Positions 42,794 to 64,000 of a stretch of 64,000 bases of DNA are shown here, piece by piece. Position numbers and translations under genes: made by a program. Within the stretch, counting starts at the first letter, position 1. Every line of letters begins with the position of its first letter. A model generated the notes under the pieces. That model saw nothing but the letters and a program-made list of their open reading frames with translations, was not told the origin of the DNA and did not search any database. Origin of the DNA: Leidyana gryllorum EB-2025a (Eukaryota; Protista; Apicomplexa); assembly GCA_048772705.1 (NCBI GenBank), contig JBLWGC010000160.1, positions 1 to 64,000 of the forward strand, read 5' to 3'.

Positions 42794-45700
42794 TTAGGTG
42801 ATGTACATATATTCCGGCTGCTTGCCCTCCTTTTGTGAAACGGAGAGGTAATCTGCGCGTTCGGGAACTAGTGCTAACCACAAAGGACAGCCACCGTACT
42901 CACCTTTCTCCACTAAGCGGTCGAGAGTCTCTTGGACCATTGTCCGATCAAAGGGTAACCCGTACTTTGCTTCCATACAATGTTCCATAATGCCCGCAAT
43001 TGGAGCCGTCTGCTTCTTCTTCATATACCTCACGATGCCCGCTTCCAGCGCGAGAGCTGCCATTCGACCAGAACGCTCGATCGCCCGCGCTTGATTCACC
43101 GCCGCATGACCCTGAGACTCGTTTTAGTTGACAGAAACCCCTCAGTGCTTACTTCTGATTCCCGCGGCAGAGTCAGTCGGACCACACTCTTCTCCCCCGC
43201 GAATTTCCGGTTTACAGTGTATATTTGCTGTGTCTCCTGGACACGAAGAGCAAGCTGAAGCCACACGAGCCGCCATCTCTACTTACATCGAAGTTCAATA
43301 CCGCTGACGCCTTTTGATCCACCATAGGCTTCAACTGAGCTCGAATTTGAGCTGCAGTGAGAGAGGGAGTGCGCCGTGTCAAAGCTGCTAACGACCATTC
43401 GCGGCTTTCATTGAACATCAGCAGTAAAATCGCTTGAGTCGCAGACAGCTCAAAGGTATATCGGCCTGGAAGTTTCTCATTCTTTCCCATCTGGTTGAAA
43501 CAAATTGTTGCATATGAATATTGCATATCGAAGCGCAACAGACGATCTGCACAACCATTTCGAGTGACAGACACCTCTCCAGCTTGACTCACTGGTGAAC
43601 TTCTCTCTGTACATGTCTCCATACTTTCTCAGCATGCTGCTAACGGAAAACGGAAGCCATATGGACGGCAGCTTGACGATTGGCTCATTCCGCTTGGCCT
43701 TGCTCTGACATACCAGTGTATAACCCGCACCGTCGCAAATTCGACACACACACACACACACACACACACGCGTGTGCACAAGGGCGGAGACACGCAGGAA
43801 TGGACAGTGCACTTACGTTGTTATTGCCAGCTTTCTGTTTGGCCGCGGCTTCTTGCTTCGCAGAGGGCCATATATTCGCTGGGCAAACACGAAGTTGTAC
43901 TTCGACGCGCCCCTCCATGAGCTCCATTTCTTCTGGGTCTTTGAGGCATTCGTCCTGTGGATTAAGTTGCAGCTTCTGCTCCAGTGCGGTTCTCTTTGAT
44001 CTCAACATGGTTTGGAAATCACAATTCAGTTGCTGAGATGCCTCCTGCAAACGACGAAAGTGAGATTAGATCGATCTTTGGCGGCGTGTGACCTCCTTAC
44101 CCATTCCCGCAAAATCGTATCCATTGTAGTCACATAGCTCTCTCCGCACTCTCGTGCGATGAGCATGACCAGGAACCTCTCAATTTCAAACTGCGCTCGT
44201 GGTTCACCGAACATGCGCAGAGCCATTGCGTCTTCGTGTGCCGACTGCAATAACGGCAATACACTTTGCACCACCAGCCGCGCATTTGGATATAACTCAC
44301 TCGTACAACGTGCTTCCATTCGTTTGCGACTAATAAGAATGTCATGCCGCACAAACGTTTCTTCATCTCGATCTCCCCCTGATCCGGATTTCGAATTGTC
44401 CGGTCAACATACGCGACAAGGCATAGCGCCAAGTGTTGAGCAAAGGCGTGGCGTTGAGTCAAAGCAGCCGCTATAGCTTCTCTGGTGGCGCGTTGTACCC
44501 TCTGCAACACCGACACTTTATAAGGCGGTTTATTCGCCTCCAACATTCGCTGATTGATCAATACCGTCATTGCTGATTCCGCCATGCTAAAGACATTCTT
44601 CTCATTGCCTTTATAGTTGAGATCAAAGAGGTCCGTGGCTTCGTTAATTCTGACGCGGCCAATCGGAAAAATCATTCGTTTCGGCACTTACGTCTCCGTC
44701 AGGCGGGCTAAAATGGCAAAACCTTCCCCTTTACTCTCTTCAGAGTTCATGACTCGCTCGTCTCCAAACACAGCATCCAGAAAGTTCAGTGTGACAGTCT
44801 GTTGCGAGAAAGGGTCGCTCAGTCCTCACTCGACGGAAATTTCACCTCACCTGGCAACCGGCGGCCCACGCTGCAATAACATTGTCCAGAAGGCCCGAGA
44901 GATCGGCACAATGGATGACAACTCTCAACAAGTCAAACTCGTTGTCGAGAAAGAGATCGAACAATCCTGAGGTGGACTCAACTTCAATGGGGACAGTGGA
45001 GGAATAAGGACGGCGTTTTATATTCACGTTCGTCTCCGTGAAGTACCGAGCTTGTTCCACGAAGAAGGCTTTTATCATCGCTTTGACTACCAATGGTCTT
45101 GTTGTGGGGTGAAATTGGTCCTCAATTCGAGTATTCTCGCAGTACATGAGGGCCACCAACGCTTTGATCAAAAGAGCAGTTGGTGTCCACGCTAACAGGG
45201 GAGCTCCAATCACTCGGGGGTAGGGTAGCGGATTGCTTGGCGGTGGTCGAACGGCCGCACATACTATCGCCCTGGCCCCCACCGTCCACCGCTTCCCCAA
45301 CTCTTCAACCATAATCGGCTGCAGATCGCGCTCGTACAACTCCAGGTCCAGAAACATGTGCGATAACGTCTTCACTTCAGCAAAGTTCTCAGTTGGATAA
45401 GTTTCGGTCAGAAGCGGCAGGTCGGCCGATGTGAGAACACTTTCCCAAACTTGAGTACTCGCCGCTACCACATTTGCTACAACGTCGCGCGCCAAACTCG
45501 GCAACAGCGAGCAATCCTTCTCAGTAATCTGGTTGACGCACATCTTTAGCGCTGTATCGGTCCATCCCTTCAAAGTACTTCGCTGTACATAAACTTGGTC
45601 CAAATACCGCAAAGTCCGCCGCACAAATCCTTGACCCTTAGCGAAGCGTTGCCATGCATTGGCAGCCGCAATGATCCGTCCAGCTCGTGTTCTCGCTTGT

Positions 45701-46290
45701 TTCACGTCCCGAGCAAGGTCATCGACCCACGATACAATCGACGTCTTCAGCCGCCGCTGAATCTCCTCCACCAACGTTAGGGCATACCCTTGTGCACACA
45801 AATCCGTCACCATCTACAAGGGACTCGTCAATCGAGTGCAGCGCGAACATGTGTATAATCATAGCCTCACAAAAACAGTCGCCTAACCATCGGAACACTC
45901 TGGTCCGAGCATCACACCATGGATACTGGTCATTCGGCAGACTGTTGTACAGCAAATCTCAGCTGACCATCTTCGGCCACAGCCGTCTCATTCACAGGTA
46001 GAGCACACACACGTGTGCTACTCACCCTATACACGGCCACCTCAGAGGGCAGCCCTTCGTCATTTACAGGGGCGAATGCCTGTTCAATCGCGCGCAGGAT
46101 CACCGCACGATGTGCTTGTACATCCTGCGTCTTGAGTCCTGGCCAGTCTGCACTTACACGTAATTGGCCTGTCAAAATACCACTCACATCGGCCGCGCGC
46201 CAACTGCACTCTCAACCTGGACGCCCTCGAAGTTTTATCTCCATAGGAGCAAAGTGTCAACCGTATTTCTACAGGGCGGAATTCCATCAT
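42794..46290 (-). CDS. Divergent cullin family protein, multi-exon
   Basis: LRYLDQVYV (cullin repeat); LSATQAILLLMFNE; neddylation motif LEAGIVRYMK; LDRLVEK(D)YL..YMYI. The 5' exons are uncertain. Confidence 0.85.
43744..43769. repeat. (AC)13 microsatellite in a cullin intron
   Basis: Direct reading of ACAC... at 43744-43769. Confidence 0.9.
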
Positions 46291-46312: not shown

Positions 46313-47191
46313 TCAAGACTGTTTGCCAAGCGCCTCAAGGTATGCAGCACTCAGAGGAGGTTGTACTGGTGGTCTAACAACATGATTGGCGGGTAGTTGG
46401 TAGGTTCTGTCTGGGTCTCCATCTTTCTGAAGGTCTCCCACGTGTACGAAGGGTATCTGCTTCTTCGTGGTCACTCCAGGAGACAACCTGTCGTAGATGT
46501 ATTTCTCGAATGTTCGGAAGTTGGCTGTCAAGTCAACTCCAAAGTCGGAAGGGATGCGCAAACCTTGACAGACGACGAAGCTTTCCAAGCTACTGATTCG
46601 ACTACTCGCAGGCTTGGCACAGTGGACACTTTCGAAGAAGACTAGGAGCTGGGTGAAAAGCCATCCCACATGTCTGCCGCGAAACACCTTGGCTACGAAA
46701 GTGCCTTTGTCCCTGAGCAGCAGCAGAGACACTCGGAGTGCCGCCAACAACAGTCTATGTTGTAAGTGTTCGTCAACGTCATGCATCCCTGTGACATCCG
46801 GAGCTCCGTCGCAGACGATCAGGTCGGCCTTTTCATTCCCGAAATGAGACATGATTGCTTCAACAGTGCCTAGACTGCTGATGTCACCTCTTAATTGGAT
46901 GACGCCTGGAATTTCTGCCATTTCCTGAAGATCGACAGCGACGATGAGCGGTTCCGGTGCAGTCGGATCCCTCTCTCGAGCTTTCTGGTGCTCATCTGTC
47001 AGCCGTCGACGGATCACTTGAGACCACGAGCCTGGGGCAGCGCATAAATCAACTACTTTCCGGACATCGGGCGTGAATATGTTATATTCATCATCCACTT
47101 GAATCAGTTTATAAGCACTTCTGGCTCTATACGCTTCCTCTTTGGCCCTTCGATAGTAAACATCACGTCTATCCTTGGACCCCTTCCCCAT
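46313..47191 (-). CDS. TRM7: tRNA (C32/G34) 2'-O-methyltransferase TRM7/FTSJ1, intronless
   Basis: MGKGSKDRRDVYYRRAKEEAYRARSAYKL; DLCAAPGSWSQ; DGAPDVTG; FVAKVFRG; KPASSR.SSLESFVVC; PVQPP. Confidence 0.95.
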   Translation of the reverse strand: MGKGSKDRRDVYYRRAKEEAYRARSAYKLIQVDDEYNIFTPDVRKVVDLCAAPGSWSQVIRRRLTDEHQKARERDPTAPEPLIVAVDLQEMAEIPGVIQLRGDISSLGTVEAIMSHFGNEKADLIVCDGAPDVTGMHDVDEHLQHRLLLAALRVSLLLLRDKGTFVAKVFRGRHVGWLFTQLLVFFESVHCAKPASSRISSLESFVVCQGLRIPSDFGVDLTANFRTFEKYIYDRLSPGVTTKKQIPFVHVGDLQKDGDPDRTYQLPANHVVRPPVQPPLSAAYLEALGKQS

Positions 47192-47901: not shown

Positions 47902-50900
47902 ATGGCTGCGAAGAGCGAGAGTACGTCGTTGGAAGCTGCAGCGGCCCGTCAACGTAGTCATTCTTCCCGTTCAAAGGCCAGACAGACGCGGAGAATCGCA
48001 CCATCGCGTAAGCTGGCGTTCTCCTTGGAGCATGCGTCGCATGGTTCGTTCGACTCCGCATCTGTCCCATTTGAGAGCGTGAAGTGTCCCTCGGGCTTCT
48101 CCAGTGGCTACGACCCCATGACTGTGTGTCGAGATGATATGGATCTGACAGTCAACCTGGAAAGCATCCTCGGATATCTCCAAGGCACTGACGAACCGCT
48201 CAAAACCGACAGCTCTTGGACCTTGCGGGCCGATGCAGTGAGCTCACACGACAGGATAGCCTTCCTCAAGGATCTGCCATCGAGTCTACTCAGTGTAGAC
48301 TTCCGTCTCCGTGAAGGTCTCGTGGAAGAGGGCACGGAGGGAGGTGGCAATGACGGCAAAGATCGGGAAGCGAGTAGTGATCCAGAGGCTCGCCAGTCTC
48401 GGAAGCAAAGTGAACACGGAGGAGAAGACGGTAATCGTCGAGAAAATGAACGAAGCCCTCCTCGACGAGATCAGAACCAAGGAGACGGAGCCGGAGACGG
48501 AGCCGGAGACGGAGCCGGAGACGGAGCCGGAGACGGAGCCGGAGACGGAGCCGGAGACGGAGCCGGAGACGGAGGACCTCCCTCTGGGGGAGGCGATGAA
48601 GGGGGTGGTGGTGACGACGGAGACGGAGACGGCAGTGACCGTGGAGACGGCAAAGACATGCCGCCCAGTGAGCGCCTATCCGAGTCGTCTGACTCTGACG
48701 AGAGTGAGGAAGAGCATTATGGGAGTGGCGCAGAGGGAGTGCGGCAACAGTCAGGAGCCCACAGCGAGGTTCAGTCTGCTGAAGGTGTGCGGCTGGACGG
48801 TGGTTCGGAAGCCAGTCGTCATCAGAAGCAGACAGGTGGCGAGGCTGCTACGGAATCTGAGAGGAGAAGTGTCCCGAGCTCGCCGGGAGCGAGTGGTGAC
48901 GAGACGATGACTGAACGGAAAGCGAAGAGACGAATGCTTCGAGCGAAACGAAAGACCAGACAATGGATGCGAACCACCCAATATATTTACGGGGGTCGTG
49001 GCAGAGTGGTGGTCGAGTCATTGCAACGTTCCGGAAGATCACAACAATTGATTTGGTATTGCCCGCAGCGTCTTCCCGAGGCTTATGCCGGGCGTCCTGA
49101 TCCCAGTCAACCCCCGTGTCTGATGTATGTGGGTTATGTTTCGAACAACGAAGATATGGTTCGGGAGGCGAGTCGGCGGCGAGTGCCTGAGAGAGTGAGG
49201 CGTAGGCTGCTGGGCAAAGCCAAACCGCTTTCTCCTGAAGGGCCGCCGCGGGAGGTTGTTCGGGTCATTAGATCAATAAAGCCGAGGGATTTCTTCATTG
49301 CTATTCAAACAGTGTGCGCCAGTCTCTACGATGGCGTGGCCGATTTCTCTGCCTACTGTCAGGAGGGTTGGGAGCGGCGAGCGAATCCGCAATGGCGACG
49401 AGTGACGTTTGGATCGCAACGGCCGAAGGTGTTGGAAGACGTCTGTGCCCGGTTGAGATTGAGACTGCCGCCCGAGCATTTGTTCCCGTGCACTGCCAAT
49501 TTGGATTCTTCGGACTTTAACTATTCTGCGGGTGTGAGGCTGATCAATTCGGGCAATCCGGCCGACTTGGCTCGCAGTCGGACGATATGTATTCCGTTTA
49601 AGGGCCATTCGATGATCAGACGGGACCCCTTCTCGTACTTTTATCTCCCGATACCGTGTCCGAAGGCCACAAACTGCCCTTTGGTGTGCTGTCCGCTGAG
49701 TCATTCCATCATGGAGAAGGCAATGCACCCACTCAACTTCCGGAGTTCAGCTTGTTGTCGATCAAAGAATCTTTCCCACGACAACTGTTCATTCTACCAT
49801 TCCCAAACAGAAGCCGAAGAGGCCATTAATCTGTGGCTTGTGTGGGAAGAGTGGTGGGGAGGCTGGCGGCTGGCGATAACACCCATCTGTGCTTACCTCA
49901 GATCGAGTCAAAAGGACATTCACCGTGAGTTTCTATTACTCTCTGTCTCTCTCTCTTTATCCTAAATACCAATTTGTGTCGTCTCAGACGCGAGATATCT
50001 TCTCGGAAAGTTGGCACACTGTCGGACTCAGCGAGTGTCCTCAGTGGAGGTGGAGCATTTACACATTCTCAAGAATATTGAAGATCACCTGAGTTGGATT
50101 CCAACGTTCGAGTTGCGGTTGGCAGCTCAACCTTTGAATCCACTCTTTGGCTTTGTTATTCAACAGAAGACGGTGATGAACTTTTGGGCACATCTGCATC
50201 ATGAGCACCTCCACCGGCCCCAGACCATCGAAGAGGTCAATGCCAAATACACTGCCTTTGTATCCTTCTGGTCGGACGCTTTGGAGCTCTATCAGCACCG
50301 AGGGGACGAAATACTCCTCAGCAGACGTCAACAGCAAAACTTATCGTGGCTCCCGAAAGGACACTCCATTACCATTGATCCCATACGGTTCCGCAAAATC
50401 CGCCCCTTCGTCGACCTCTCTGCGCTGCTGCAAAGTGGCCGCGTTGTCCTCCTCGAAGACGAGTCTCCGGGACGGCTGGCGGGCATCCCTCTCGTCCCGA
50501 AGAACTATTTACCCCCAATTGTACATCCGCCCCCACGGCCCCCGGTTATTCCTGACCCGCCGGGCGTAAGTCGCACCGGTATGCTCTCGACGGCTGGAAT
50601 GGCGGCCAGGATACAAAACGAAAATAGGGGACATATTGTGGGCACCCCTCTCGACTCTAATTGGACCGAAGACCAAATTTCTGCCAGTGATCTCGCCGTC
50701 GGCTTCCCGCACCTTCCGGGTTCTGTTGCAGATGGACTGCCGGAAAGACCACACGACAGCTCGGACGATTTTGGAGGAGAAGACGAAGACTTTGAAAACG
50801 GAACCAACAACGACAACGGAGACAGCAAGAGACGGCGGCCGGTGTTCGAGAATATAGTGACTGGGTGTCCGACGGGGTCGCTGACCCTCGGGCAGCCGCA

Positions 50901-51600
50901 GCTTAAGGACAAAAGTGCGAGTGTTCTACACGGCCGAATAGTTCAGGCGGCTCAGTCTCGAGGCCTGGGAGCCCTCGAGGGCGAGGCTATGTCTCCGGGA
51001 TGGGGTATGCCACCTGAGGGACAGAGTTTGGCCAACCGTCGCCTGATAGAACAAGCCTGGGCCCACTGTGGGAGACAGGCCGGCCTGCCGATCAGCACCG
51101 ATGGCAACGGGTTTACAACTGATGACATGGCTCAAATGGTTATGCGTCTCAAAGAAAAGGAGTACATTCTCCAAAGACGACTGAAAGACCAAAAGAGGGC
51201 AAAACTCGTCTTCCCCACCGTCGTCGTCGCGAGGGCCGAAAAGGGAAAGCGAAACAAAGACGGGGTCAAGTACCACGGATCCGAGTGGATTCAGCGCAGA
51301 CGCCGACTCAAACGTCGAGATCTGAAGCGACAGTGGAACCGCGGCGGGTGGAAGGAGCCCACCGGGGAAACTACTGGCACAGTTTGTCGGGGTACCGATA
51401 CGACAGACTTGGATAAACGGACTGTAGAACCCGCCCGATTCTCTTGGTACACAGCGAAAAGCTCAACGAGCAGTGACGGATCGCCCACGCGAAAAGCCCG
51501 CAACATTCAAACAGGCGCCCAGGATAACAACCATTCCCGCTCAAATGATCAATCCCCCCCAATGTCAAGAAAAAGACGTTGGCGGCGCACGAGTGTTTGA
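47902..51600 (+). CDS. Tandem CCCH zinc-finger family paralog 1 (Unkempt/RR-TZF-like), intron 49925-49987
   Basis: RRDPFSYFYLPIPCPKATNCPLVCCPLSH..E..MHP..FRS..C..C.FYH; WLVWEEWWGGWRLA; LAAQPLNPLFG in exon 2. Confidence 0.8.
48481..48574 (+). repeat. 12-nt coding tandem repeat (GGAGACGGAGCC)x7.8 encoding GDGA
   Basis: Direct reading. Confidence 0.95.
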
Positions 51601-52197
51601 GCGCTGGCTGGCTGGCTGTTTGAATAAGCGAATTGTCGAGGAACAGGTGTCGTTGAGAACGTATAGCCACACAGGTTTACCGATTGGTGGGAGTCTCCTT
51701 TTATTCACTTTTTTACGGATTGCGTCTCTTTCGCGGTGGCTGAACTCTACACGCACCAATCGGCCGAACTTGCGGCATTCGTTTACAAAAGTAGTCATAC
51801 AAAGTTCACACGAGTACGCCACGTTGGCAATGTCGGTCTGAGTAGTCTTAATGTAAATGTGGGGTGCACATTCACCGGGGGCTGTGAGTGAGGGTGCCGA
51901 TGCACCCGGCACCCCTCTGACTTGATCTTCGTTCGCAACACGGGTAAGAGTTTGCTGCCGCCAAGTTTGTATGTGTTTGTTTCAGAGTGGCCGGCCATGT
52001 TCGGGGCTGCCAACGATGGGTGGTGGGCACATTAGGGGAGTGCTGACGGGGGTGGCGAGAGTCCACGCTCCCTAACATGGCATCATCCACATTGTGCCCT
52101 CCCCGGGGTTTCCTACTCCTACACAAGAGACGCAACTATTTCTCCCGGGGTCGCCCCCACTCTACCACCCCATTTGATAAGATTTCTCCCTCTCGGG

Positions 52198-52287
52198 CCC
52201 CATCCATTGCTTGCGCGCCCGTATTGCGTTCCTTTCTCGCGGGCCCGAGAAATGGCGGCCCCCATCCTTTGCTTGCGCGCCCGTATT
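52198..52287. repeat. 28-nt direct repeat pair (1 mismatch) flanking a hairpin
   Basis: CCCCATCC(A/T)TTGCTTGCGCGCCCGTATT at 52198 and 52260; TTTCTCG/CGAGAAA inverted repeat between them. Confidence 0.85.
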
Positions 52288-52821
52288 TCTCCGTCCGGCT
52301 GCCGTCCCTTTTCTCTTCGGCTTGCACGAGAATCCACCCCTATCGCCGATTTTCATCCCACACTCAGATCAACCGACATTCCAAAGTGTCGCTTATTGTG
52401 AGGCTCCACCCCTACTGCAATACTGACGACCTCGCGTAATCAAACTGAAATTGGCCGCCGCCGTTGTAAGCGCAGCCAAAGTTCACGACCGACTTCAAAT
52501 CCCGCGGTCTCCCCCTCCCAGACGCCGGAATGGCCGCGTGGGGCAGCACAGGCGGCATTTGGTCGACGGAAGGTGGCCAAAGAGACAGCGACCTGCCACA
52601 AGGCAAGTCACTGCTCTGAGATTGTCCTCGACGGTTGATGGGGAACAAATGTTACAATTACCGATGCGCAAATTGTGTTGAATTCGGTGCAGCTGAGATG
52701 CGTAACAATTGTTGGGCGTTGCATGTGATCTAATAATTCGAGATCTAAAGTCGCATTAAGTGTGTTATATTGCACGTGTGCTTTGTGATACATTAAAACT
52801 ACTGAACATTACTTGAAGAAT

Positions 52822-54769
52822 ATGACTGATCAATCACAGTTTTTCTGGAGTTCAAGACTCAATGCGGGTCGATGGAAGGAGCCCAAAGCTGAGGGTTTCG
52901 AGCCCGGCGAAATTGTGGAAATCATTCCGGCTCCTTCGCCGACCGCATTGCCCTTATCGGGACCGGCCCTGCAGGAGAGTGCGAGTGCGACGGATCGAGT
53001 GCCTTCCTCGGCACCGGCGTTGGGATGTCGACAGTCACTTTTGGAGGAGCTCGAGGACGACAAGTTGAGGAGGAAGGATCAGAAAGAAGCGACGACCGAA
53101 TGGCCACCACCGGGTGCCCAGCTGTGTTGGTGGAGGGTCAACTTTAAGGCAGACCAAGATGTATATTATTCACCTCAATTACAAAGTACTCAGTACATTA
53201 GGGCAAAGATGAACGCTCCTCAAGTACCATTGCTGGTGATGCCGTCGACGGGCACTGTGGAGGACCAAACGATTGAGCCTTCGAATAATGAGCTGGACGA
53301 GGCTGTCGTCCGACGGGTTCTGGGAGTGTCGGATATTGAAGAGCACGACGTCGAGCCGATCTGTGCCATAAGACGGACGACACTCGGCAGACTGTGGTAT
53401 CAGACCGATCTGATGACGTGTCGTCTGTTCAATCCGACCATTCCAGTGTCTCACCTGGGCGCCGATGGATGGCAGACGTTGGTCAATCATCAATGGAATC
53501 CAATGAGGAGACTTCAAACTTATCCAAAGAGTGTGAGGAAGAACGCGAGAAAGAGAGGTTGGAGACTGCCCCCAATTAACGGCCTCCCCGTTTCTCCCAA
53601 CTTGGAGAGCGGAGGCCTAAACTACACGTTGGCGAAGAATTTGGAGACCACTGGGACTGATTCTCGACGAAGTCGCGTATGTTGCCCGTTCAGGAACCCG
53701 AAAGGGCTGCGTCGCGACCCCTTCACGTACTTTTATCTCCCGGCGACGTGTCCGAAAGGGTTGTCCTGTCCCAACATTTGCTGTCCTTTCAGCCACTCAT
53801 ACCTGGAGATGGATCTGCACCCCATACGGTACAGAACTCAGACCTGCACTGCGCAAGACGAGTGCAACACGCCGTACTGCGGGTTCATCCATCGCAAACG
53901 GGAGAGTCTGGACGCGCGACACCAATGGCTATTGTGGGAAGAGTACTGGTGTGGGTGGCGTCAAGCGCTTCCCGCTATCGAGTTTTACGCAGGAATGATA
54001 TCGAAAGTCAACTACGGTAAGTATACGTTGCTCCCCCCTTTCGAGTACTATTTTGCCTCTCATTGCAGAAGTCGAAAACACTCTCGAAGCTTTGGCTCGG
54101 GCTCGAGACCTGCGCATTCTGAACAGTACTGAATACGACTTGGCGTGGCTCAAAGAGTTCGAAGACAGATCGGAGTGGTACACCAACTTTGACTTTCGCA
54201 TCTCGGCTCAGCCGCTCAATCCCCTATTTGGATTGATCTTCACTACTCGAATCAGCGGGACATTCTGGGATTTACAGCTCCGTCGGAACGCGACTCCGGA
54301 TCAGCTCGACTTTTTCGAGAACAGACTGTATGAGCTGTCGCGGGCGTGGAGTGACTGCTACAGTCTCTGCCGCTATCGGGAGTCGAGGTTACCACCGCTG
54401 CGACCCTTAAGAGTCACTGATATCGTGCATCCCCCTGAAGTCGAGCAGGTCGATCAAGTCGAGGTGGAAGTGGACTTGGCCTTTGCAGAAGAGCCTCCGC
54501 TGGCAGCTCCTCCCACTCTGGCACGGATGTTACCCGAAGGCAAGAGTTCGTGGGCAGATATTGTCAGAGGGGTGAGCAGTCTGTCAACAATGGCTTCCAT
54601 ATCGGAACGGCCGCCGGCGGCTGAGGGGTCGGCTGAAAACAAGTCAGCCCCACATGAGCAGCCGGCCAACACTCCGAGCGAGAAGGTGTCAGAGAAGAAA
54701 GCCCCCGGAACTTACAAAGAGGTCGTGCAAGAATACACGTGTTATGCGAATTATCCATTCTGTGCGTGA
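52822..54769 (+). CDS. Tandem CCCH zinc-finger family paralog 2, intron 54017-54068
   Basis: RRDPFTYFYLPATCPKGLSCPNICCPFSH..E..LHP.RYRTQTC-x5-C-x4-C-x3-H; WEEYWCGWR; ISAQPLNPLFG. Confidence 0.85.
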
Positions 54770-54856
54770 GTGATTCTGACCGAACTCTTTGGTGTTTTGT
54801 GGTGAATGATATGTCTGCTTTTGACCAAATAATCTCTCCTAATCGTAAGATTTCGA

Positions 54857-54910
54857 GCGAAACTGAAGCTGTAAGCGCCCACGTGGCGCGAAACTGAAGC
54901 TGTAAGCGCC
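54857..54910. promoter_or_regulatory. Perfect 23-nt direct repeat (period 31) with CACGTG spacer and E2F-like GCGCGAAA, upstream of paralog 3
   Basis: GCGAAACTGAAGCTGTAAGCGCC at 54857 and 54888. The regulatory role is inferred. Confidence 0.45.
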
Positions 54911-55502
54911 ACAGGGCGACTTTGCTCGACTTTGCTGACTTTGCCCTTCTGGGGGAGACGGCGGCTGTTACGGCCACTATCGCTCTACGACCCGCTGAAA
55001 TGGAGAGTGCCGCTTACAACGCCCTCTCTCTCCCTCACCAATGTACAGGTGCACCCTGGCGTTTTGGGACTTTAGTCATGCACACGTGCTGCGGCGACGT
55101 GCCGTGGACGTGGGATGGTGGTGCGTGGTGTGAGGAGACGGGTCGAAGTACATTGGAGTTTTTGAGAGTGGCGATGGATCGCTGAGTTGGGGAGTGTTCT
55201 TGGGAGAGTATCATAATGGTGTCGTTACTGCACGTCACTGAGCTGAGGTACCTGACGAGTTTGATCTTGCGATTCTACACGATGACATTCGGAGTGAGTA
55301 CAAGTTGGCTATGGATGGGTTTATCGACGTGTCTTAGGTGCAATTCCAGTCGTTGCGTGGTGATCTGTCATCACTACCGTCGCTTCCTGCCGACTTGAGG
55401 GGGCCGCTCTTGAGAGGGAGTGTGCCCGCTCAGTTCCAGTGGGCGCGACGGGTTCTGGCGGACCAGTGGGGAGTGCCAACCACATTCTTTCACAAGGGAG
55501 AA

Positions 55503-57452
55503 ATGCCGTTGGACTTGTTGGTCAGTTGGGACGTGGAGGAGGTGGATCAGAATCTGCACCGTCGACTCCACCGACCATCGAAAGTTCACCCCCCGCCTTC
55601 CCCGCATGGCATCATCCACACGGCGCCTACGGTGCAGGATGGAGGTGACAACGTGGACGGAGGGCACTTGACGGCGCCTCTCCTGCGGACTCGACCACCG
55701 CTACTCGAGTCTCTGGAAGCGGTGGGTGCTTTCACGGGACCAAAGCTGCGGAAGAAGCGCACACTTGATCAATCCGACCCGGAGACGGCTGTGGCCAAAC
55801 GGCGACGACACTCACTGCTCGGAAACGACAGAGACATGAACTTTTTGGCCGATATGGCTTCACTATCACTGTCACCACTTGCGGAAGGCGTCCACGGCAT
55901 CATCCCCTGTGAATCGATGAGGAGCGACTCGCAAAAAAGTTGGTCGGCGATTGATCTCAGTCCCGATCAACATGTCTACTATTCCCCACAGACTCAAACT
56001 GCCCAATATTTGAGATCTCAGATGAAGCTATCGCCACTCCCACTGCTCTTCATACCTTCGACCGGTCACCCGCATAACGCCACCATGGAACCTTCGAATG
56101 ATCAGATCGATGTAGATCTCGTTTACAGTACGCTTGGCTTAAACGTTTCAAATGATTCTTCCGATGCTAAAGATGTGTTCGCTGTCAGACAGACCACACT
56201 GCGGAAGCTTTGGTATCTGGTCGACTTGATGACCTTTAGGCTGACCAATCCCACCACTTCCGTCAGGGCTATCGGAGCCGATACGTGGCAACGTTCAGTC
56301 AACCACCAATGGCGTCACACAGACCGATACCAGCGCTATCCAGAGTCCATATTGCAGGACGCAAAACTCAGAGAAACACACCTTCCAGACTCAATGCTAT
56401 TGCCAATCACCCCTGAAATGGACAGTGGTGGCCTCAAATTCTCATCAGCACAAGACTTGTTCAGACAAAGAAAGTTTGCCCACAGCAACCGACTCTGCGC
56501 CCCTTTCAACAGAACCGACAATGTCCGACGCGATCCATTCACCTACTTTTATCTCCCAGCGCTCTGCCCCATAGGCAAACTGTGCCCCAACATATGCTGT
56601 CCCTACAGCCACTCGCACCTCGAGCTACGACTTCATCCCATATGCTACCGGACAAAACCGTGTCAAAGACCACACCACTGCCACACGGACCACTGCAATT
56701 ACACCCACAACGAGCATCAAGTCGTCCAGGCGAAGACACTGTGGATACTTTGGGAAGAGCACTGGTGCGGATGGCGTCTGGCGTTACCCGCGATCGAATT
56801 CTATGTCGGTCTCATCACCGGGGTTCAGGCGGGTGAGTCTTTTACCATTTCTTCTGCTCCCATTCGCTCTGCAGAGGTCAGAAGGGTCCGTAGAGAACTG
56901 CATCGCGCCCGAGACATTCGTCTCGACCAAATGACTCTGGAGGAGGTGGACGAGCTAAAGTCCCTCGAAGACGAGTCCGGTTGGCTCAACAACTTTGACA
57001 TCAAACTCTCAGCTCAACCGCTCAATCCCCTCTTTGGACTCGTTTTCCGCACCAAAGCCGTTGGTATCTTTTGGGATTTGCAAAGGCGACGCAGACAGAG
57101 TCCCCAAGTCATAAGTCTCATTGCTGACAAACTCCACCACATCTCCCGAGAATGGCTCGACTGCTTCAACCTCTCCAATTCCAGGCACTCAGGACCACTC
57201 CAACAGGATTTCTGCCTCTCGGACATCTCTCTGCCACCCGACTCGGACCCACACCGCATCGACCTCACCGGGCCACTTTTCCACGCGGCTGAGCCTCGGT
57301 GCGAGCGAACTTTCACGGCCACGAGCGATGGAGACGGAGCGGCAGAAATCACACCGGCAACAAAGAGATCCTGGGCAGACATTGTCAGATGTGGAAGCAG
57401 TCAGACCACTATGGCGTCGTTCTCGGAGAATTTGGAGGCCACTTCTAATTAG
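55503..57452 (+). CDS. Tandem CCCH zinc-finger family paralog 3, in-frame 42-nt intron 56833-56874
   Basis: RRDPFTYFYLPALCPIGKLCPNICCPYSH..LHP.CYRTKPC..C..CNYTH; WEEHWCGWRLAL; LSAQPLNPLFG. The start codon is uncertain. Confidence 0.85.
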   Translation: MPLDLLVSWDVEEVDQNLHRRLHRPSKVHPPPSPHGIIHTAPTVQDGGDNVDGGHLTAPLLRTRPPLLESLEAVGAFTGPKLRKKRTLDQSDPETAVAKRRRHSLLGNDRDMNFLADMASLSLSPLAEGVHGIIPCESMRSDSQKSWSAIDLSPDQHVYYSPQTQTAQYLRSQMKLSPLPLLFIPSTGHPHNATMEPSNDQIDVDLVYSTLGLNVSNDSSDAKDVFAVRQTTLRKLWYLVDLMTFRLTNPTTSVRAIGADTWQRSVNHQWRHTDRYQRYPESILQDAKLRETHLPDSMLLPITPEMDSGGLKFSSAQDLFRQRKFAHSNRLCAPFNRTDNVRRDPFTYFYLPALCPIGKLCPNICCPYSHSHLELRLHPICYRTKPCQRPHHCHTDHCNYTHNEHQVVQAKTLWILWEEHWCGWRLALPAIEFYVGLITGVQAGESFTISSAPIRSAEVRRVRRELHRARDIRLDQMTLEEVDELKSLEDESGWLNNFDIKLSAQPLNPLFGLVFRTKAVGIFWDLQRRRRQSPQVISLIADKLHHISREWLDCFNLSNSRHSGPLQQDFCLSDISLPPDSDPHRIDLTGPLFHAAEPRCERTFTATSDGDGAAEITPATKRSWADIVRCGSSQTTMASFSENLEATSN

Positions 57453-57617
57453 CGGTATCCGTATAAGCCACGATAATACAACAATCGATCAAACATTCGA
57501 AAGTGCCCAATAACTTTTCGCCAAGTTTCAGTCCCGATAACTCAATTCGCATCCCATTATTGTTGTACACATTGTAAAATTTCATATCCTTCTGGACTCA
57601 GTGATCTGCCCATCGAA

Positions 57618-57643
57618 CGATCGATCGATCGATCGATCGATCG
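57618..57643. repeat. (CGAT)6.5 perfect 26-nt palindromic microsatellite
   Basis: Direct reading; lies 12 nt upstream of the Hsp70-like ATG. Confidence 0.9.
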
Positions 57644-57655
57644 GTGTCCGGCGAG

Positions 57656-59719
57656 ATGCCCCCAAGAATTTCAGTCGGAATCGACTTTGGAGTCGTCGAT
57701 TCAATCGCAGCTGTGATCCATCTCGATGAATTAACGGAAGTAATCACAATTGATGGAAAGAACCGAATACCGAACATTGTATATCTCGGCCCAGATCCCC
57801 GAATTCAGCCACCCATTGTGGGACTTCCCGCACAACGCTTCCGGTATACGGATCCATTCTTCACAGTGTATAACATACTGCCGCTTTTGGGTCGTCAAAT
57901 AACTCACCCAACGGTTCAACGACTGAAAGCCAAACTCAGTTATCGGCTGTCGAAAGGGAGCGGTGCCAAAGTTCTGGTGGGACATTGTCGCGACCATCCC
58001 GAAGTCATCGTAGCGATGATTCTACGGAAAATCCGGCTGACTGCGGGGACACAACTGGAAGGTGAAGTGGAGACTGCAACAATCGCCGTCCCGTCCGACT
58101 TTGACGGCACGCAGCGTCGCGCAATGGAGTCTGCTGGATATATTGCCGGATTCAAGAACGTCGACGTAATCGACAGGCGATCTGCGCTTTCTCATTGGAT
58201 TGAGAAAAAGATCCAATGGCCTCAGAAACTGTTGTTATACGATTTCGGCTATAATGTGGAGGCGTCTCTGATCGACGTGTCCAGGGTGCCGACCTCAGCA
58301 AGCTTATGGCCTGTGAGAGCTTCGTATTGCGCAACAATCGATTCCGAAGAAGTGGGGGGAGGAAAGAGCGAAGAGACACTGTTTGATCATTGTGTCCGAG
58401 AATTCGACCGTTTGTACGGATCCGAGTGGAAGGCCTCTCAACGTTGGGCGTCGAGTTTGCGGTCAGCGTGCGAAGATGCAATTCGAAAGCTGACAGTGGA
58501 GGATAAAACGACGATCACTGTAAAAGTCGACAGTAAAGCGTACGAAGTGATTGTTACGCGGAGAGCGTTGGAATCATTGAATGAGAGTCATTTCGAAAAG
58601 TGTCGATCGATTATTCGCGACCTTTTGACACAATCTCAATTGTCAGTGACGGATGTCACAAACTTCGCCATATCGAGTCGGGCTTCTGTTCTGCCAACTT
58701 TGAGAACTCATCTCGTCACTGAGCTGAAGGAGGTGACGAATGAGGGGGCGGAGTTTTGGATCGCTTTCGGAGCGGCTCTCCGGCGTTGTCGCTTCGACTA
58801 CCGGGAAAGACTCCGACTTCCCATTATTGTCGCTTCTGGAAACACACTGACACAGATGGTATCTGTTAACGAGATCCTACCCACAACACTACTGGCTAGA
58901 ACTCCCTCTCCCTCGAATGACGGAGTGCCCACTGCCCTAAATCTGTATGAGGGGTATTTCACAAATGTCGGACGCAACAAATACCTCTGCAGCCTCAGTC
59001 CGGGGGACAGGATATATTTGAGGGCTGACGGTGTAGTCGAAGTGAATAAAAAATATCGGGCAGTACTGAGTGGATTTGAGTCGCAAATGTCTCTGACGGC
59101 CGTATCGGTGTTTAAGAAACGGTTGGAAAGACCGTTTACGACTTCGGACAGAAAGTGCGCCGCAGTGAAACATATTACTTTTGCGTTTGCGGGTGTCATT
59201 GACACTGTTCTGAGCGCAAATCAATCGAAGTTCGGTACTGAGGTCGCGGGTCGGGAGATTGCCGACGTCCGCACTCTACTCGAAGAATTATCCTCTCTCG
59301 GAGACGATTCGGACTTCGAGAGTTATTTCGAATTGTTGGACATCGTGTGTGGCCCTTTGCTGTCCTTTCTGGGCCAATCGATGGTTAGAGAACACTTTAG
59401 AGCTCTTATGGGTCCGAAGGCGCTGAGTGTCGAAGAGAAAAGGGAAATCTGCGAGCGTTGGGATTATTGGCGAACGGCTTACGACTCCTGGGCTGCTATC
59501 AAATGGCACGAAATCTGCGGAGAAAGCCACAGAGGGAACGGCGAGAGCGATTTGTGGCATTGGAGCAGAGACCGCAGTATTGCAGAAGAGATCGAAGAGG
59601 GATCGACGGATTTCGTCTCCTATTCTCGGGAGGACAGAATGGCACAAGTTGGGGAGGAATCACAATTTTATGTGCAGTCGGTGACCGATGTGACCACCGG
59701 TGTCGGCTGCGCTGAGTAA
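57656..59719 (+). CDS. Highly divergent Hsp70-family protein (probable pseudo-ATPase), intronless
   Basis: VGIDFG; GKNRIPNIV; ATIAVPSDF..QRRAMESAGYIAG; YDFG; LRSACEDAIRKLT; VTRRALESL; IAFGAA, all in Hsp70 NBD order. Confidence 0.85.
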   Translation: MPPRISVGIDFGVVDSIAAVIHLDELTEVITIDGKNRIPNIVYLGPDPRIQPPIVGLPAQRFRYTDPFFTVYNILPLLGRQITHPTVQRLKAKLSYRLSKGSGAKVLVGHCRDHPEVIVAMILRKIRLTAGTQLEGEVETATIAVPSDFDGTQRRAMESAGYIAGFKNVDVIDRRSALSHWIEKKIQWPQKLLLYDFGYNVEASLIDVSRVPTSASLWPVRASYCATIDSEEVGGGKSEETLFDHCVREFDRLYGSEWKASQRWASSLRSACEDAIRKLTVEDKTTITVKVDSKAYEVIVTRRALESLNESHFEKCRSIIRDLLTQSQLSVTDVTNFAISSRASVLPTLRTHLVTELKEVTNEGAEFWIAFGAALRRCRFDYRERLRLPIIVASGNTLTQMVSVNEILPTTLLARTPSPSNDGVPTALNLYEGYFTNVGRNKYLCSLSPGDRIYLRADGVVEVNKKYRAVLSGFESQMSLTAVSVFKKRLERPFTTSDRKCAAVKHITFAFAGVIDTVLSANQSKFGTEVAGREIADVRTLLEELSSLGDDSDFESYFELLDIVCGPLLSFLGQSMVREHFRALMGPKALSVEEKREICERWDYWRTAYDSWAAIKWHEICGESHRGNGESDLWHWSRDRSIAEEIEEGSTDFVSYSREDRMAQVGEESQFYVQSVTDVTTGVGCAE

Positions 59720-59887
59720 CGGTGATCGACCGGAGGATCAAAATGGAAAATGTGTGACCCATGCGATTGTTGGACACTGTCGCGCACTTTTGTCTACTCA
59801 CCGATTGCATGTACGAGTTGAACTCGAAGACTTACGGAGTGGTTAAATGTGTCACGCAAAAGAATCTGACCAAACATTTCAACAAGA

Positions 59888-62800
59888 ATGAAGTCTGGTA
59901 CCAAAGCTCGAGTCCCGAACGTCCATCCGGGCGAGGATACCGCCCCACCACCTCAAGTTGACTGGGCAACAACGGCTCTGCAAGAAGATCAGTTGTTCTA
60001 CTTTTGTCCTCAACTTCAGATCGAGCAGTATGAGAGCGCTGCTAATAATCAGCCCTCCCGACCCCTGATGTTGTTGGCCTCCTCCTCCGGTCGTGCAGAA
60101 GAGAACACGACGACCCCACAAGTCGAGGCCGCTGAAGAAGCAGCCGTTCAGACGGTTCTGCGTATAGACGATTCAGTCAAAGATATATATGTCATCAAGA
60201 AGTGCCGTCTGCGAGACTATTGGAATCAATTGGACTATCTGTGCCGAAAACTGACTGCTCACGAGGTGACTCTGCCCAGTATCGCCAATGACGGCTGGCA
60301 GCGAGACGTCAACCCGCAGTGGCGTCAAGGCGCAAACTTCCAATCGTATCCAGCTCACCTCGTCAAGAAATGGCGAGACAACGGCAGGACTCTCCCAGCT
60401 GCCAACACCTTCCCCATAACCCCCTATCTGAGGAGCGGCCAGTTTGCCTTCTCGACGGCCTACGCTTACATCCAACACGGTCAGTGGGACCAGGCCAACC
60501 TGACATGTGCGCCGTTCCAAGTCAAACCGCTGCTCAGGCGAGACCCGTTCACCTACTTTTACCTCCCGACTATCTGTCCAAAGAGCACCCAGTGTCCCAA
60601 CCTATGCTGCCCCTTCGGTCATTCACCCCTCGAGATATCTCTCCATCCCATCACATGGAAATGGAAGTCCTGCTGGTATGGAACTGGATGCCGCCGCCGA
60701 GCCAACTGCATCTTCGCCCACGGCCAGAAAGAGTCGGAGAATAGCAGAAACGCCTGGCTGCTCTGGGAGAGACACTGGGCCGGCTGGAGACTGGCCCTCA
60801 CAGCCATCAAAGTCTACGCTGCTCGTATATCTGCTGCCGATACCCCCGGTAAGTGAACTTACACAACGAAACTTACCTCCAACTCGTGTAATCATTCTCA
60901 GAACTCACTGAACTGCTCTACGGCATCGAATGCTCACGTGACCGACGCATCAATGGGGCCACCATCGATGATCTCGAAACCCTCAAAGAGTACGAAGATG
61001 CACCCCACTGGTTCACTGACTTCGACATGAAACTATCGGCCCAACCACTCAACCCTCTCTTTGGCATCGTCTACACAGCTCGAATCGCGGCACCCCACTG
61101 GGATCTCCTCAACCGTCGCAATGCCCCCCACGTCGTTCGCCATCACTTCTTCCACATTGTCAATATCTGCAATGAAATGTGGGAGGATTGCTACAATCTT
61201 TGCGCCGCCCGCACATCACATCCCCTCGGATGTGCCCAAATGGGGGACGCCGTCGCTGAAAAAGGCAAAATCGAACAGTCTCCCATCTACAGAGTCGGCA
61301 GCAGCGCCTCAACCAGTGCAGGACGACCCAGCATCAGCAACACGGACTATTCTCGCCGAAGCACATACACTAACACCACTCCATCCAACCGCCCGTCGAG
61401 AAGCAGCTACAATGCTGGCTATCAAAACACAAACAACTTGGCCCCCGCCAACAATCATTCAAACCCTAACCCCAGGCGACTTTCAGCCGATGCGGCTGAA
61501 TTTCACCCACCACCGCCCAATCCCTTCAAAATCCAAAGCCGCAACGTTCCTCACGACCAACCTAATCAACCCAAATCAGGAACGCACCAACCCGCCCACT
61601 CCAGAGTTCAACCAGATGTGGAGTACTTCCAAACCGACCCAACGCCAAAATCAAAGAAAGGGAAGTCCAAGCCTGGAAAGGGCAATCAAACTGCTGCAAC
61701 CTCTCACCAAATCCCAGCCAAGCCTCAGAATCAAAAGCAAGCCCAACAACCCCCAAATCCGAAATCAGGAAAGCAGAATCAGGAACGAAGCGAGAACAAG
61801 AATAATGTAGTTTTACCTCCAGCGTCGCACCCACCAGCCGAGGGCACCAAAAAGGGCAAAGGCAGCGGGAAGAAGCGACCTCAACCCAATGACAGAGTAT
61901 CAGACGCATTGCCTCCCCTCAACGCAGTTTCGTCCCTCGGTAGAGCCCTCCAGCCCGATCCAGCAAAACTGGAAGAGACTCCACCGAAAGGAGGGCAACT
62001 TCAACAGCCGGTTTACAAGAAGCGTCGAAAGGACCAGACCGTGGAAAAAGCAGCAGCCCCACAACCAGCTCCCCCTGAGTCCGAGGGACTGCCCCCACTG
62101 CACGCCGTCTCATCGCTCGGCAGAGCCCTCCAGCCCGAACCACCGAAGCAGCAGGAGTCGCCAGTCAAGGCAGCACCAGCTGGTGAAGCGGCTTCCAAGA
62201 AGCGGAGTAAGGATAAGGGGGCGAAGAAAGACGCCGCTGCCCCACCAACTCCCAATGACTCCGAGGGACTGCCCCCACTGCACGCCGCCTCATCACTCGG
62301 CAGAGCCCTCCAGCCCGAACCACCGAAGCCGCAGGAGTCGCCAGTCAAGGCAGCACCAGCTGCTGAAGTAGCCGACAAGAAGCGCGAGAAGCGGAATAAG
62401 GATAAGGGGGCGAAGAAAGACGCCGCTGCCCCACCAACTCCCCCTGAGTCCGAGGGACTGCCCCCACTGCACGCCGTCTCATCGCTCGGCAGAGCCCTCC
62501 AGCCCGAACCACCGAAGCAGCAGGAGTCGCCAGTCAAGGCAGCACCAGCTGGTGAAGTAGCCGACAAGAAGCGCGAGAAGCGGAATAAGGATAAGGGGGC
62601 GAAGAAAGACGCCGCTGCCCCACCAACTCCCAATGACTCCGAGGGACTGCCCCCACTGCACGCCGCCTCATCACTCGGCAGAGCCCTCCAGCCCGAACCA
62701 CCGAAGCCGCAGGAGTCGCCAGTCAAGGCAGCACCAGCTGGTGAAGTAGCCGACAAGAAGCGCGAGAAGCGGAATAAGGATAAGGGGGCGAAGAAAGACG

Positions 62801-64000
62801 CCGCTGCCCCACCAACTCCCCCTGAGTCCGAGGGACTGCCCCCACTGCACGCCGCCTCATCGCTCGGCAGAGCCCTCCAGCCCGAACCACCGAAGCCGCA
62901 GGAGTCGCCTGTCAAGGCAGCACCAGCTGGTGAAGCGGCTTCCAAGAAGCGCGAGAAGCGGAATAAGGATAAGGGGGCGAAGAAAGACGCCGCTGGTCCA
63001 CCAGCTCCCCCTGAGTCCGAGGCACTGCCCCCACTGCACGCCGCCTCATCGCTCGGCAGAGCCCTCCAGCCAGAACCACCGAAGCCGCAGGAGTCGCCTG
63101 TCAAGGCAGCACCAGCTGGTGAAGCGGCTTCCAAGAAGCGCGAGAAGCGGAATAAGGATAAGGGGGCGAAGAAAGACGCCGCTGGTCCACCAGCTCCCCC
63201 TGAGTCCGAGGCACTGCCCCCACTGCACGCCGCCTCATCGCTCGGCAGAGCCCTCCAGCCCGAACCACCGAAGCCGCAGGAGTCGCCAGTCAAGGCAGCA
63301 CCAGCTGGTGAAGCGGCTTCCAAGAAGCGCGAGAAGCGGAATAAGGATAAGGGGGTGAAGAAAGACGCCGCTGGTCCACCAGCTCCTCCTGAGTCCGAGG
63401 CACTGCCCCCACTGCACGCCGCCTCATCGCTCGGCAGAGCCCTCCAGCCCGAACCACCGAAGCCGCAGGAGTCGCCAGCCAAGGCAGCACCAGCTGATGA
63501 TGCGGCTTCCAAGAAGCGTAAGAAGCGGAATAAGGATAAGGGGGCGAAGGAAGGCGCCGCTGGTCCACCAGCTCCCAATGACTCCGAGGGACTGCCCCCA
63601 CTGCACGCCGCCTCATCACTCGGCAGAGCCCTCCAGCCCGAACCACCGAAGCAGCAGGAGTCGCCAGTCAAGGCAGCACCAGCTGGTGAAGCGGCTTCCA
63701 AGAAGCGGAGTAAGGATAAGGGGGCGAAGAAAGACGCCGCTGCCCCACCAACTCCCACTGAGTCCGATGGACTGCCACCACTCCAAACTGTCTCATCACT
63801 GGGCAGATCATTGCAACCCGCACCGGCGAAGTCCCAGAAGAAGACGCAAGGCGGTAAGAGCATCTCAACTGACCTCCAATCCACCTTACCAACCTCAGGG
63901 TCTGAAATGCGCCATTCAGATGCCCCTGATGAGGCACAAGAGCAGAAAGCTGGGGAACAGAACAAAACTGGAGACAGGCCAGGTCTGCGGGAGGAACACG
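59888..64000 (+). CDS. Tandem CCCH zinc-finger family paralog 4, intron 60849-60901, with long repetitive C-terminal exon running off the window
   Basis: RRDPFTYFYLPTICPKSTQCPNLCCPFGH..LHP..C-x5-C-x5-C-x3-H. Exon 2 from 60902 contains LSAQPLNPLFG and stays open to 64000; it is missing from the ORF track because it has no stop in the window. Confidence 0.85.
62089..63771 (+). repeat. Coding minisatellite: 9 near-identical units (180 + 7x189 + 180 nt)
   Basis: LPPL codons recur at 62089, 62269, 62458, 62647, 62836, 63025, 63214, 63403, 63592 and 63772. Confidence 0.95.

Follow-up and report, generated by a model that had tools for sequence, protein, structure and literature searches.

A tandem array of diverged CCCH zinc-finger paralogs related to Unkempt in the gregarine Leidyana gryllorum

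What do four neighbouring genes for diverged CCCH zinc-finger proteins do in a gregarine, and to which family do they belong? The genes in question, here named G1–G4, lie on contig JBLWGC010000160.1 of Leidyana gryllorum EB-2025a (GenBank assembly GCA_048772705.1; 15.5 Mb, the genome searched throughout), towards the end of the 64,000-nt stretch that we analysed (contig positions 1–64,000, hereafter the window; coordinates are window positions on the + strand unless stated otherwise). An initial annotation, made from the sequence alone, had described them as a tandem array of proteins like Unkempt and the arginine-rich tandem zinc fingers (RR-TZF) of plants, and as a candidate lineage-specific mRNA-regulatory system. 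We find that they are old tandem duplicates with a common core. The explanation that we favour, with some reserve, is that they encode subfunctionalised post-transcriptional mRNA regulators, probably of the sexual phase, as their sequences and the analogy with a studied Plasmodium relative suggest.

Four old paralogs with a common core

Profile searches recovered the four co-oriented cores on the + strand, as the initial annotation had it, with E values of 1e-133 to 1e-149. The paralogs do stand side by side, except that an Hsp70-like gene interrupts the array between copies 3 and 4. Each gene has a single predicted GT-AG intron (42–63 nt, phase 1) at the same codon, directly after the Trp-rich helix, in keeping with the expected maximum of one intron per gene. 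A phase-1 intron at the identical codon in L023, a homolog from a different sample that is probably a gregarine, supports the four gene models (Table 1), whose splice junctions were checked by local scripted translation; searches were run per exon. The G3 intron (42 nt) is in frame and stop-free, so that its retention might yield an isoform longer by 14 residues, and the G3 frame is open already from position 55338. The stop codon of G4 lies at contig position 64212, 212 bases past the window end.

The copies share 29–47% protein identity and 42–55% DNA identity over ~400 codons, and the proportion of synonymous differences (pS 0.72–0.77, saturated) exceeds that of nonsynonymous ones (pN 0.36–0.52). 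Because synonymous sites are saturated while the protein is conserved, the copies are old duplicates under purifying selection, and both a recent duplication and an assembly artefact were rejected. That they are decaying or assembly-made duplicates is scarcely credible: the degenerate second finger of G1 would fit decay, but the long open frames, the low DNA identity, the saturated synonymous sites alongside a conserved protein and the canonical introns all speak for maintained genes. The proposed distinct architecture with longer intergenic regions proved only partly true, as the gaps (710, 1221, ~730, 203 and 168 bp) include very short ones and intronless open reading frames (ORFs) also occur in the housekeeping block.

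All four cores contain a putative first-finger remnant without zinc ligands, two CCCH fingers and Trp-rich helices, and continue into an exon-2 portion, including AQPLNPLFG, that is invariant across G1–G4. No further finger was found in either exon beyond the remnant and these two. The first finger reads C-x5-C-x4-C-x3-H in 4/4 copies. After a 16-residue linker (with E..LHP in G2), the second has the same spacing in G2 and G3, and has x5 ahead of the third Cys in G4; in G1 it lacks the second Cys, a departure from the shared CCCH pattern originally noted. Its C-x-F-x-H aromatic is kept in 4/4 copies, and the adjacent positions, which we take from the Unkempt–RNA structure to be base-contact positions, vary among the copies and against most relatives. 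The eight finger ligands, RR, E, HP and the finger aromatics are retained in most of 36 aligned sequences.

The cores are preceded by an array-specific N-terminal region present in G1–G4, which matches no known family and is modelled by AlphaFold with low confidence. Its only occurrence seen outside this genome is in P0022, an incomplete gene, probably from a gregarine, that lies at the end of its contig. Judged by its sequence, only the array subgroup carrying this extra region looks narrow.

Kinship with Unkempt and spread across Apicomplexa

AlphaFold, run on the natural unspliced G3 frame (as were both folds), predicted a compact domain of 282 residues (predicted local distance difference test, pLDDT, 87.8; predicted template modelling score, pTM, 0.85), with the 14 intron-encoded residues as the sole dip in confidence. 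The top match in the PDB of a profile built from gregarine-type members was Unkempt zinc fingers 4–6 (ZnF4-6; E 1.4e-6), and a structure search with the G3 model placed both Unkempt clusters first (Z 4.9 and 4.2). The top structural match has a root-mean-square deviation of 3.2 over 83 residues; its scores are low and concordant with the sequence profile. Foldseek gave the Unkempt cluster a probability of 0.99 but an E value of 0.23. The structural comparison suggested at the outset thus returned Unkempt clusters as top hits, with Z below 5, and the proposed kinship is supported by profile and structure. Among the neighbours of the domain in the Atlas were Unkempt and plant AtC3H23-type proteins; feature searches of the Atlas with the flanking N- and C-terminal sequences yielded no usable result. 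A structure search found no clear PDB match for the helices around the fingers, which does not by itself prove a new fold.

The alignment to 5ELK 207-321 covers the whole three-finger chain and starts at the LP..P segment, ~60 residues ahead of the first real finger. The remnant would therefore be the first finger of an Unkempt-like cluster that has lost its zinc ligands and kept its place. As the structural scores are low, we regard this as a supported hypothesis.

The presumed loss of these ligands throughout the subfamily also bears on what the domain binds. It could be mainly a protein-interaction scaffold in messenger ribonucleoprotein granules, with the Trp helix and helical cage binding partners and RNA contact secondary or lost, at least in G1, where finger 2 lacks a Cys; in addition, the copies differ at several positions within and near the fingers, whereas their Trp residues are nearly invariant. 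However, the conserved Trp may be mere core packing, and the retention of the ligands and other finger residues across most of the aligned sequences speaks against a scaffold. We consider the scaffold improbable and prefer the reading of mRNA regulators that bind RNA.

With Unkempt and UNKL (5ELK, 5ELH), the best match in both sequence and structure, the array shares RR.P...C..C..C..H..E..HP..Y.T..C. Unkempt has a RING and binds UAG and U/A-rich RNA. Its six CCCH fingers form two three-finger clusters (PMC12136788), accompanied by a coiled coil, whereas the array proteins have one cluster, wrapped in helices, with a ligand-less first finger. Pfam searches for an Unkempt-type C-terminal coiled coil and RING gave no hit in any exon 2 (G4 was scanned to 61800; the remainder is repeat and disorder). 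The plant RR-TZF proteins (AtTZF1-11) resemble the array in an Arg-rich segment and in two CCCH fingers 16 residues apart, the second C-x5-C-x4-C-x3-H. They are defined by a CHCH motif and a first finger of the form C-x5-20-C-x5-C-x3-H (PMC4468379). In the array only C.PF is left of the CHCH motif (its His is absent in 36/36 aligned sequences), the first finger is spaced differently, and a Trp helix and helical extension are added. We rejected membership in either family, given the missing CHCH motif, the other first-finger spacing, two fingers instead of six and no RING. The array proteins probably work like Unkempt or RR-TZF yet belong to neither.

A search with a hidden Markov model of the four cores, as initially proposed, found relatives across Apicomplexa and two further members in this genome, which thus has six full members: the array of four, C126 (beside Tudor-SN) and C202. 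Among 1.84 billion proteins, the exon-1 core profile gave 854 HMMER matches, ~33 of which span fingers and Trp helix and are separated by a score gap from the mass of finger-only matches. Named matches come from Gregarina, Blabericola, Neospora, Besnoitia, Eimeria, Cardiosporidium, Rhytidocystis, Babesia and Plasmodium; among those looked up, which were not all, none was named outside Apicomplexa. Pfam gave nothing above threshold for them. Homolog searches by word index, with either the G2 core or alignment A3 as query, gave no match, which is explained by their length window and word seeding.

By sequence, the array belongs to an Apicomplexa-wide, undescribed, PDG2-like subfamily without a Pfam model, characterised by a remnant P...PF..RRD..F(Y)(L/I)P, two CCCH fingers and a W..WE..W..WR helix. 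In the literature searched, the gregarine, Neospora, Besnoitia and P. cynomolgi genes are unnamed and the link between Unkempt and Apicomplexa is not made. The Trp helix occurs Apicomplexa-wide, and the QPLN extension was found only in gregarine-type members. GNI_076730, GNI_077040 and the Blabericola and Gregarina sp. Poly1 proteins, all unnamed hypotheticals, share with the array the ~280-residue domain including the QPLN/QxLNPL extension, as well as linked paralogs; they lack the array N-terminal region and an SGG(L/F)x(Y/F) insert.

In the tree, the Plasmodium, piroplasm and coccidian members form one well-supported clade separate from the array, and the gregarine-type members split into at least five lineages whose branching forms an unresolved fan. 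One of these lineages is the array, with the topology ((G2,G3),G4),G1 (support 91 in one tree, 62/70 in another), which supports a local expansion of the family. At least three other gregarine assemblies also have linked paralogs, in pairs and never four: in tandem after Tudor-SN in ERR10900107, within 6 kb on a JGI contig, and ~11 kb apart in G. niphandrodes (GNI_077040 and GNI_076730). Their recurrence indicates that expansion of the family is a gregarine habit, and the array is the largest expansion seen. Together with the occurrence of the finger and Trp-helix unit across Apicomplexa, this leaves the idea of a lineage-specific system unsupported in its first form; strict lineage specificity was rejected.

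The Plasmodium relative and the probable role of the array

Among the relatives is a Plasmodium protein that has been studied genetically. In P. vinckei, a 746-kb contig carries first the gene for a MYND protein, then that for the MTR4 helicase and then the zinc-finger member, and the P. berghei order is PBANKA_0101000 (MYND), PBANKA_0100900 (MTR4), PBANKA_0100800 (zinc finger; PMC7616090 supplement). The reported C3H1 domain of the Plasmodium protein, residues 66-92 (PMC11378252), falls exactly on finger 2 of the P. cynomolgi protein. Since gene order and finger position agree, the Plasmodium member is PBANKA_0100800. By the same gene order it matches PF3D7_0602000 (PfPDG2), PF3D7_0602100 being PfMtr4 (PMC4630921). 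Identity with the IESI-2/GD1-type triple-finger proteins was dropped, as the gene identifiers differ.

PBANKA_0100800/PfPDG2, NCLIV_011940 and BESB_015910 have, like the array, the remnant, two fingers and the Trp helix (HHalign probability 99.1%, 36% identity over 100 columns), together with long low-complexity tails. In the Plasmodium protein the first finger shares the C-x5-C-x4-C spacing of the array, and the second is longer; three parts of the array proteins are missing from it, namely the W..VN..W segment near the N-terminus, the region specific to the array N-termini and the QPLNPL extension.

Knockout of the gene reduced exflagellation by >90%, abolished ookinetes and oocysts, and eliminated transmission (PMC11378252), and a barcoded screen found both fertility measures reduced (−6.4 and −9.0; bioRxiv 2023.12.25.572958). 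Blood stages do not need PBANKA_0100800; it increases strongly over an AP2-G time course and appears in a GD1 pull-down table (18 and 14 counts versus 0 and 0; PMC7616090 supplement). PfPDG2 is male-gametocyte enriched, near RNF1 and MD3, and a 2025 paper could assign no distinct zinc finger to it (PMC12193022). Relative to this gene, the array copies are paralogs and not one-to-one orthologs: they fall outside the core-apicomplexan clade, with the deep branches unresolved. The phenotype is therefore a lead for the array, not proof, and lends only indirect support to the stage specificity first suggested as possible.

Further hints come from the tails, which are low-complexity, disorder-prone and, as described initially, mostly unrelated among the copies; the exception is a 22-residue segment common to G2 and G3 (73% identity, E 2e-6). 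This SWADIV segment resembles the SYAEVC core of LARP4 CR2, with which LARP4 attaches to ribosomal RACK1 and stimulates translation (bioRxiv 2024.11.01.621267). Both proteins carry S-aromatic-A-acidic-aliphatic-aliphatic in the disordered tail of an mRNA regulator (a presumed role in the case of G2 and G3), with Trp in place of Tyr and a different protein family here. A strict SWADIV-type pattern, picked post hoc, occurs in 3/39 relatives against 0.07 expected, and a looser one in only 3–4/39, so that the motif is not family-wide.

The PAM2 consensus L-S/N-x-x-A-x-E-F-x-P is matched within a disordered region by G4 only. Unkempt likewise has a PAM2-like motif in a disordered tail and recruits PABP and CCR4-NOT through PAM2 and short motifs (PMC10542489). 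G1 carries neither PAM2 nor SWADIV; it has a long acidic/Gly-rich N-tail, with a 12-bp repeat at 48481-48574, and a basic C-tail. The G4 tail also holds a Pro/Lys/Ala-rich coding repeat with a basic stretch; it exceeds 8.6 copies if degenerate flanking units are included, and repeat-related sequence runs on to the G4 stop at 64212.

Under the explanation that we favour, the ~280-residue domain would recognise short motifs in single-stranded mRNA, and the machinery that decides mRNA fate would be recruited by the disordered tails. In G4, PAM2 would engage poly(A)-binding protein, and in G2 and G3 SWADIV might engage ribosomal RACK1; G1 would act with neither motif, a degenerate second finger and basic tails. 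Since candidate effector motifs and finger state differ per copy, the tasks of a single ancestral regulator are probably shared out among the copies according to target, effector or stage. The process would most likely be sexual development (gamont, syzygy or gametocyst), as in the Plasmodium relative.

Several observations weigh against this. The structural match to Unkempt is weak (Z <5, Foldseek E ~0.2) and the model contains no zinc; Pfam recognises no family above threshold; and the likeness of SWADIV to the LARP4 core was matched by eye. In the tree, the two dispersed paralogs stand at least as near to the Plasmodium gene as the array does, so that its phenotype can be carried over to the array only in a loose sense. 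The array proteins might instead be RNA-binding regulators of trophozoite growth, stress or housekeeping mRNAs, with the sexual role held by the dispersed C126 or C202 paralog. The separate branch of the array favours this, as do the conserved place of the C126 copy next to Tudor-SN and the function of plant RR-TZF proteins in development and stress (PMC4468379). However, asexual stages can do without the sole tested subfamily member, while fertility requires it, and we consider a non-sexual role unlikely.

Neighbouring genes and meaning of the expansion

Table 1 Features of the array and Hsp70-like loci (window positions; other contigs as named)
Feature	Position	Strand	Details
G1 (copy 1)	47902-51600	+	exons 47902-49924, 49988-51600; ~1211 aa
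G2 (copy 2)	52822-54769	+	exons 52822-54016, 54069-54769; ~631 aa
G3 (copy 3)	55503-57452	+	exons to 56832, from 56875; ~635 aa from first ATG
G4 (copy 4)	59888-64212	+	exons 59888-60848, 60902-64212; ~1423 aa
Predicted phase-1 introns	G1 49925-49987; G2 54017-54068; G3 56833-56874; G4 60849-60901	+	
Array-specific N-terminal region	G2 53158-53448	+	~100 aa; starts SPQ..Y
Putative first-finger remnant, zinc-less	G2 53560-53720	+	LP..P-V/I ... PF..RRDP
Tandem CCCH fingers	G2 53749-53892; G1 49657-49800; G3 56565-56708; G4 60575-60721	+	
Trp-rich helices and helical extension	G2 53920-54320	+	W..WE..W.GWR; ends AQPLNPLFG
SWADIV tail segments	G2 54542-54607; G3 57363-57428	+	
PAM2-like motif	G4 tail 61480-61509	+	LSADAAEFHP; chance in shuffled sequence 0.00015
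Tandem coding repeat	G4 tail 62198-63807	+	189 bp (63 aa); 8.6 copies (Tandem Repeats Finder); 94% match
Hsp70-like gene	57656-59719	+	intronless; between G3 and G4; Pfam HSP70 E 3e-39, residues 11-359 only
Other Hsp70-like clusters	C104:1252-1269 kb; C230:1579-1595 kb; C2:201-211 kb; C169:79-81 kb		

The Hsp70-like gene within the array is not canonical, its phosphate-loop and catalytic motifs being altered: where Hsp70 ATPases have G.D.GTT, INEP and D.GGGT, it reads GIDFGVV, IDRR and DFGYNV. The genome holds at least 23 divergent Hsp70-like ORFs (18–36% identity), mostly long and many in tandem clusters of their own. One could imagine the array and this gene as one co-regulated unit, a pseudo-chaperone serving the zinc-finger proteins, since it shares their strand and is flanked by the gaps of 203 and 168 bp. 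Against this, at least 22 other such ORFs sit elsewhere, and no Hsp70 family was called beside homologs at the other loci examined. We rejected a functional link and hold a common unit to be very improbable; the gene is probably a passenger or unrelated insertion.

The array is flanked by Trm7 (46313-47191), an arrangement absent in two other samples. The three best matches of Trm7 are from Gregarina sp. Poly1, Blabericola migrator and Gregarina sp. Pseudo9; they reach 64% identity and score ~80 bits higher than the following match and ~90 higher than the first named non-gregarine one; the genome is therefore that of a eugregarine, consistent with the apicomplexan-like origin first suggested. 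The dispersed C126 paralog (L018:4974-5705) directly follows Tudor-SN, as does the tandem pair in the other sample (L021), a hint that linkage of the subfamily with this RNA-metabolism gene is conserved. In ERR10900107, Trm7 has as its neighbour a homolog of the gene found here beside the C126 paralog (L047:3-3059 and L018:2259-4533), and the Trm7/array and C126 loci may be halves of one ancestral neighbourhood.

Weaker Unkempt-like finger genes lie elsewhere in the genome (L044, at C140:5798-6052; L012; L013), of which the one on C140 appears to retain an intact upstream finger. On the − strand of the window, a 323-residue ORF next to Trm7 (44842-45813) gives the impression of a divergent cullin N-terminal repeat, a 1145-residue protein with a signal peptide and Thr runs (24809-28246) is a possible surface protein, and a Lys/Ala/Pro-rich low-complexity protein (36998-39025) is possibly cytoskeletal.

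It is tempting, although doubtful at this level of detail, to see in the array an apicomplexan regulator of sexual development that gregarines expanded into a modular set. Such a set would combine a new domain type, in which helices cage an Unkempt-like cluster whose first finger has no zinc, and diverged RNA specificity with PABP (G4) and RACK1 (G2, G3) as effectors and a nuclear or inhibitory role for G1; it would act as a post-transcriptional cascade that times the pairing of gamonts and the formation of gametes, and it would provide a structural frame for PDG2.

The array does not represent a new kind of system, since both tandem arrays of paralogs and CCCH regulators whose tails bear motifs are common. 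Its comparison defines the domain of an essential transmission factor, links it tentatively to the Unkempt cluster fold and marks its invariant residues, which makes the mechanism of the Plasmodium member testable. The gregarine expansion, in turn, offers a natural experiment in which one regulator would have been split among paralogs with differing effector motifs.

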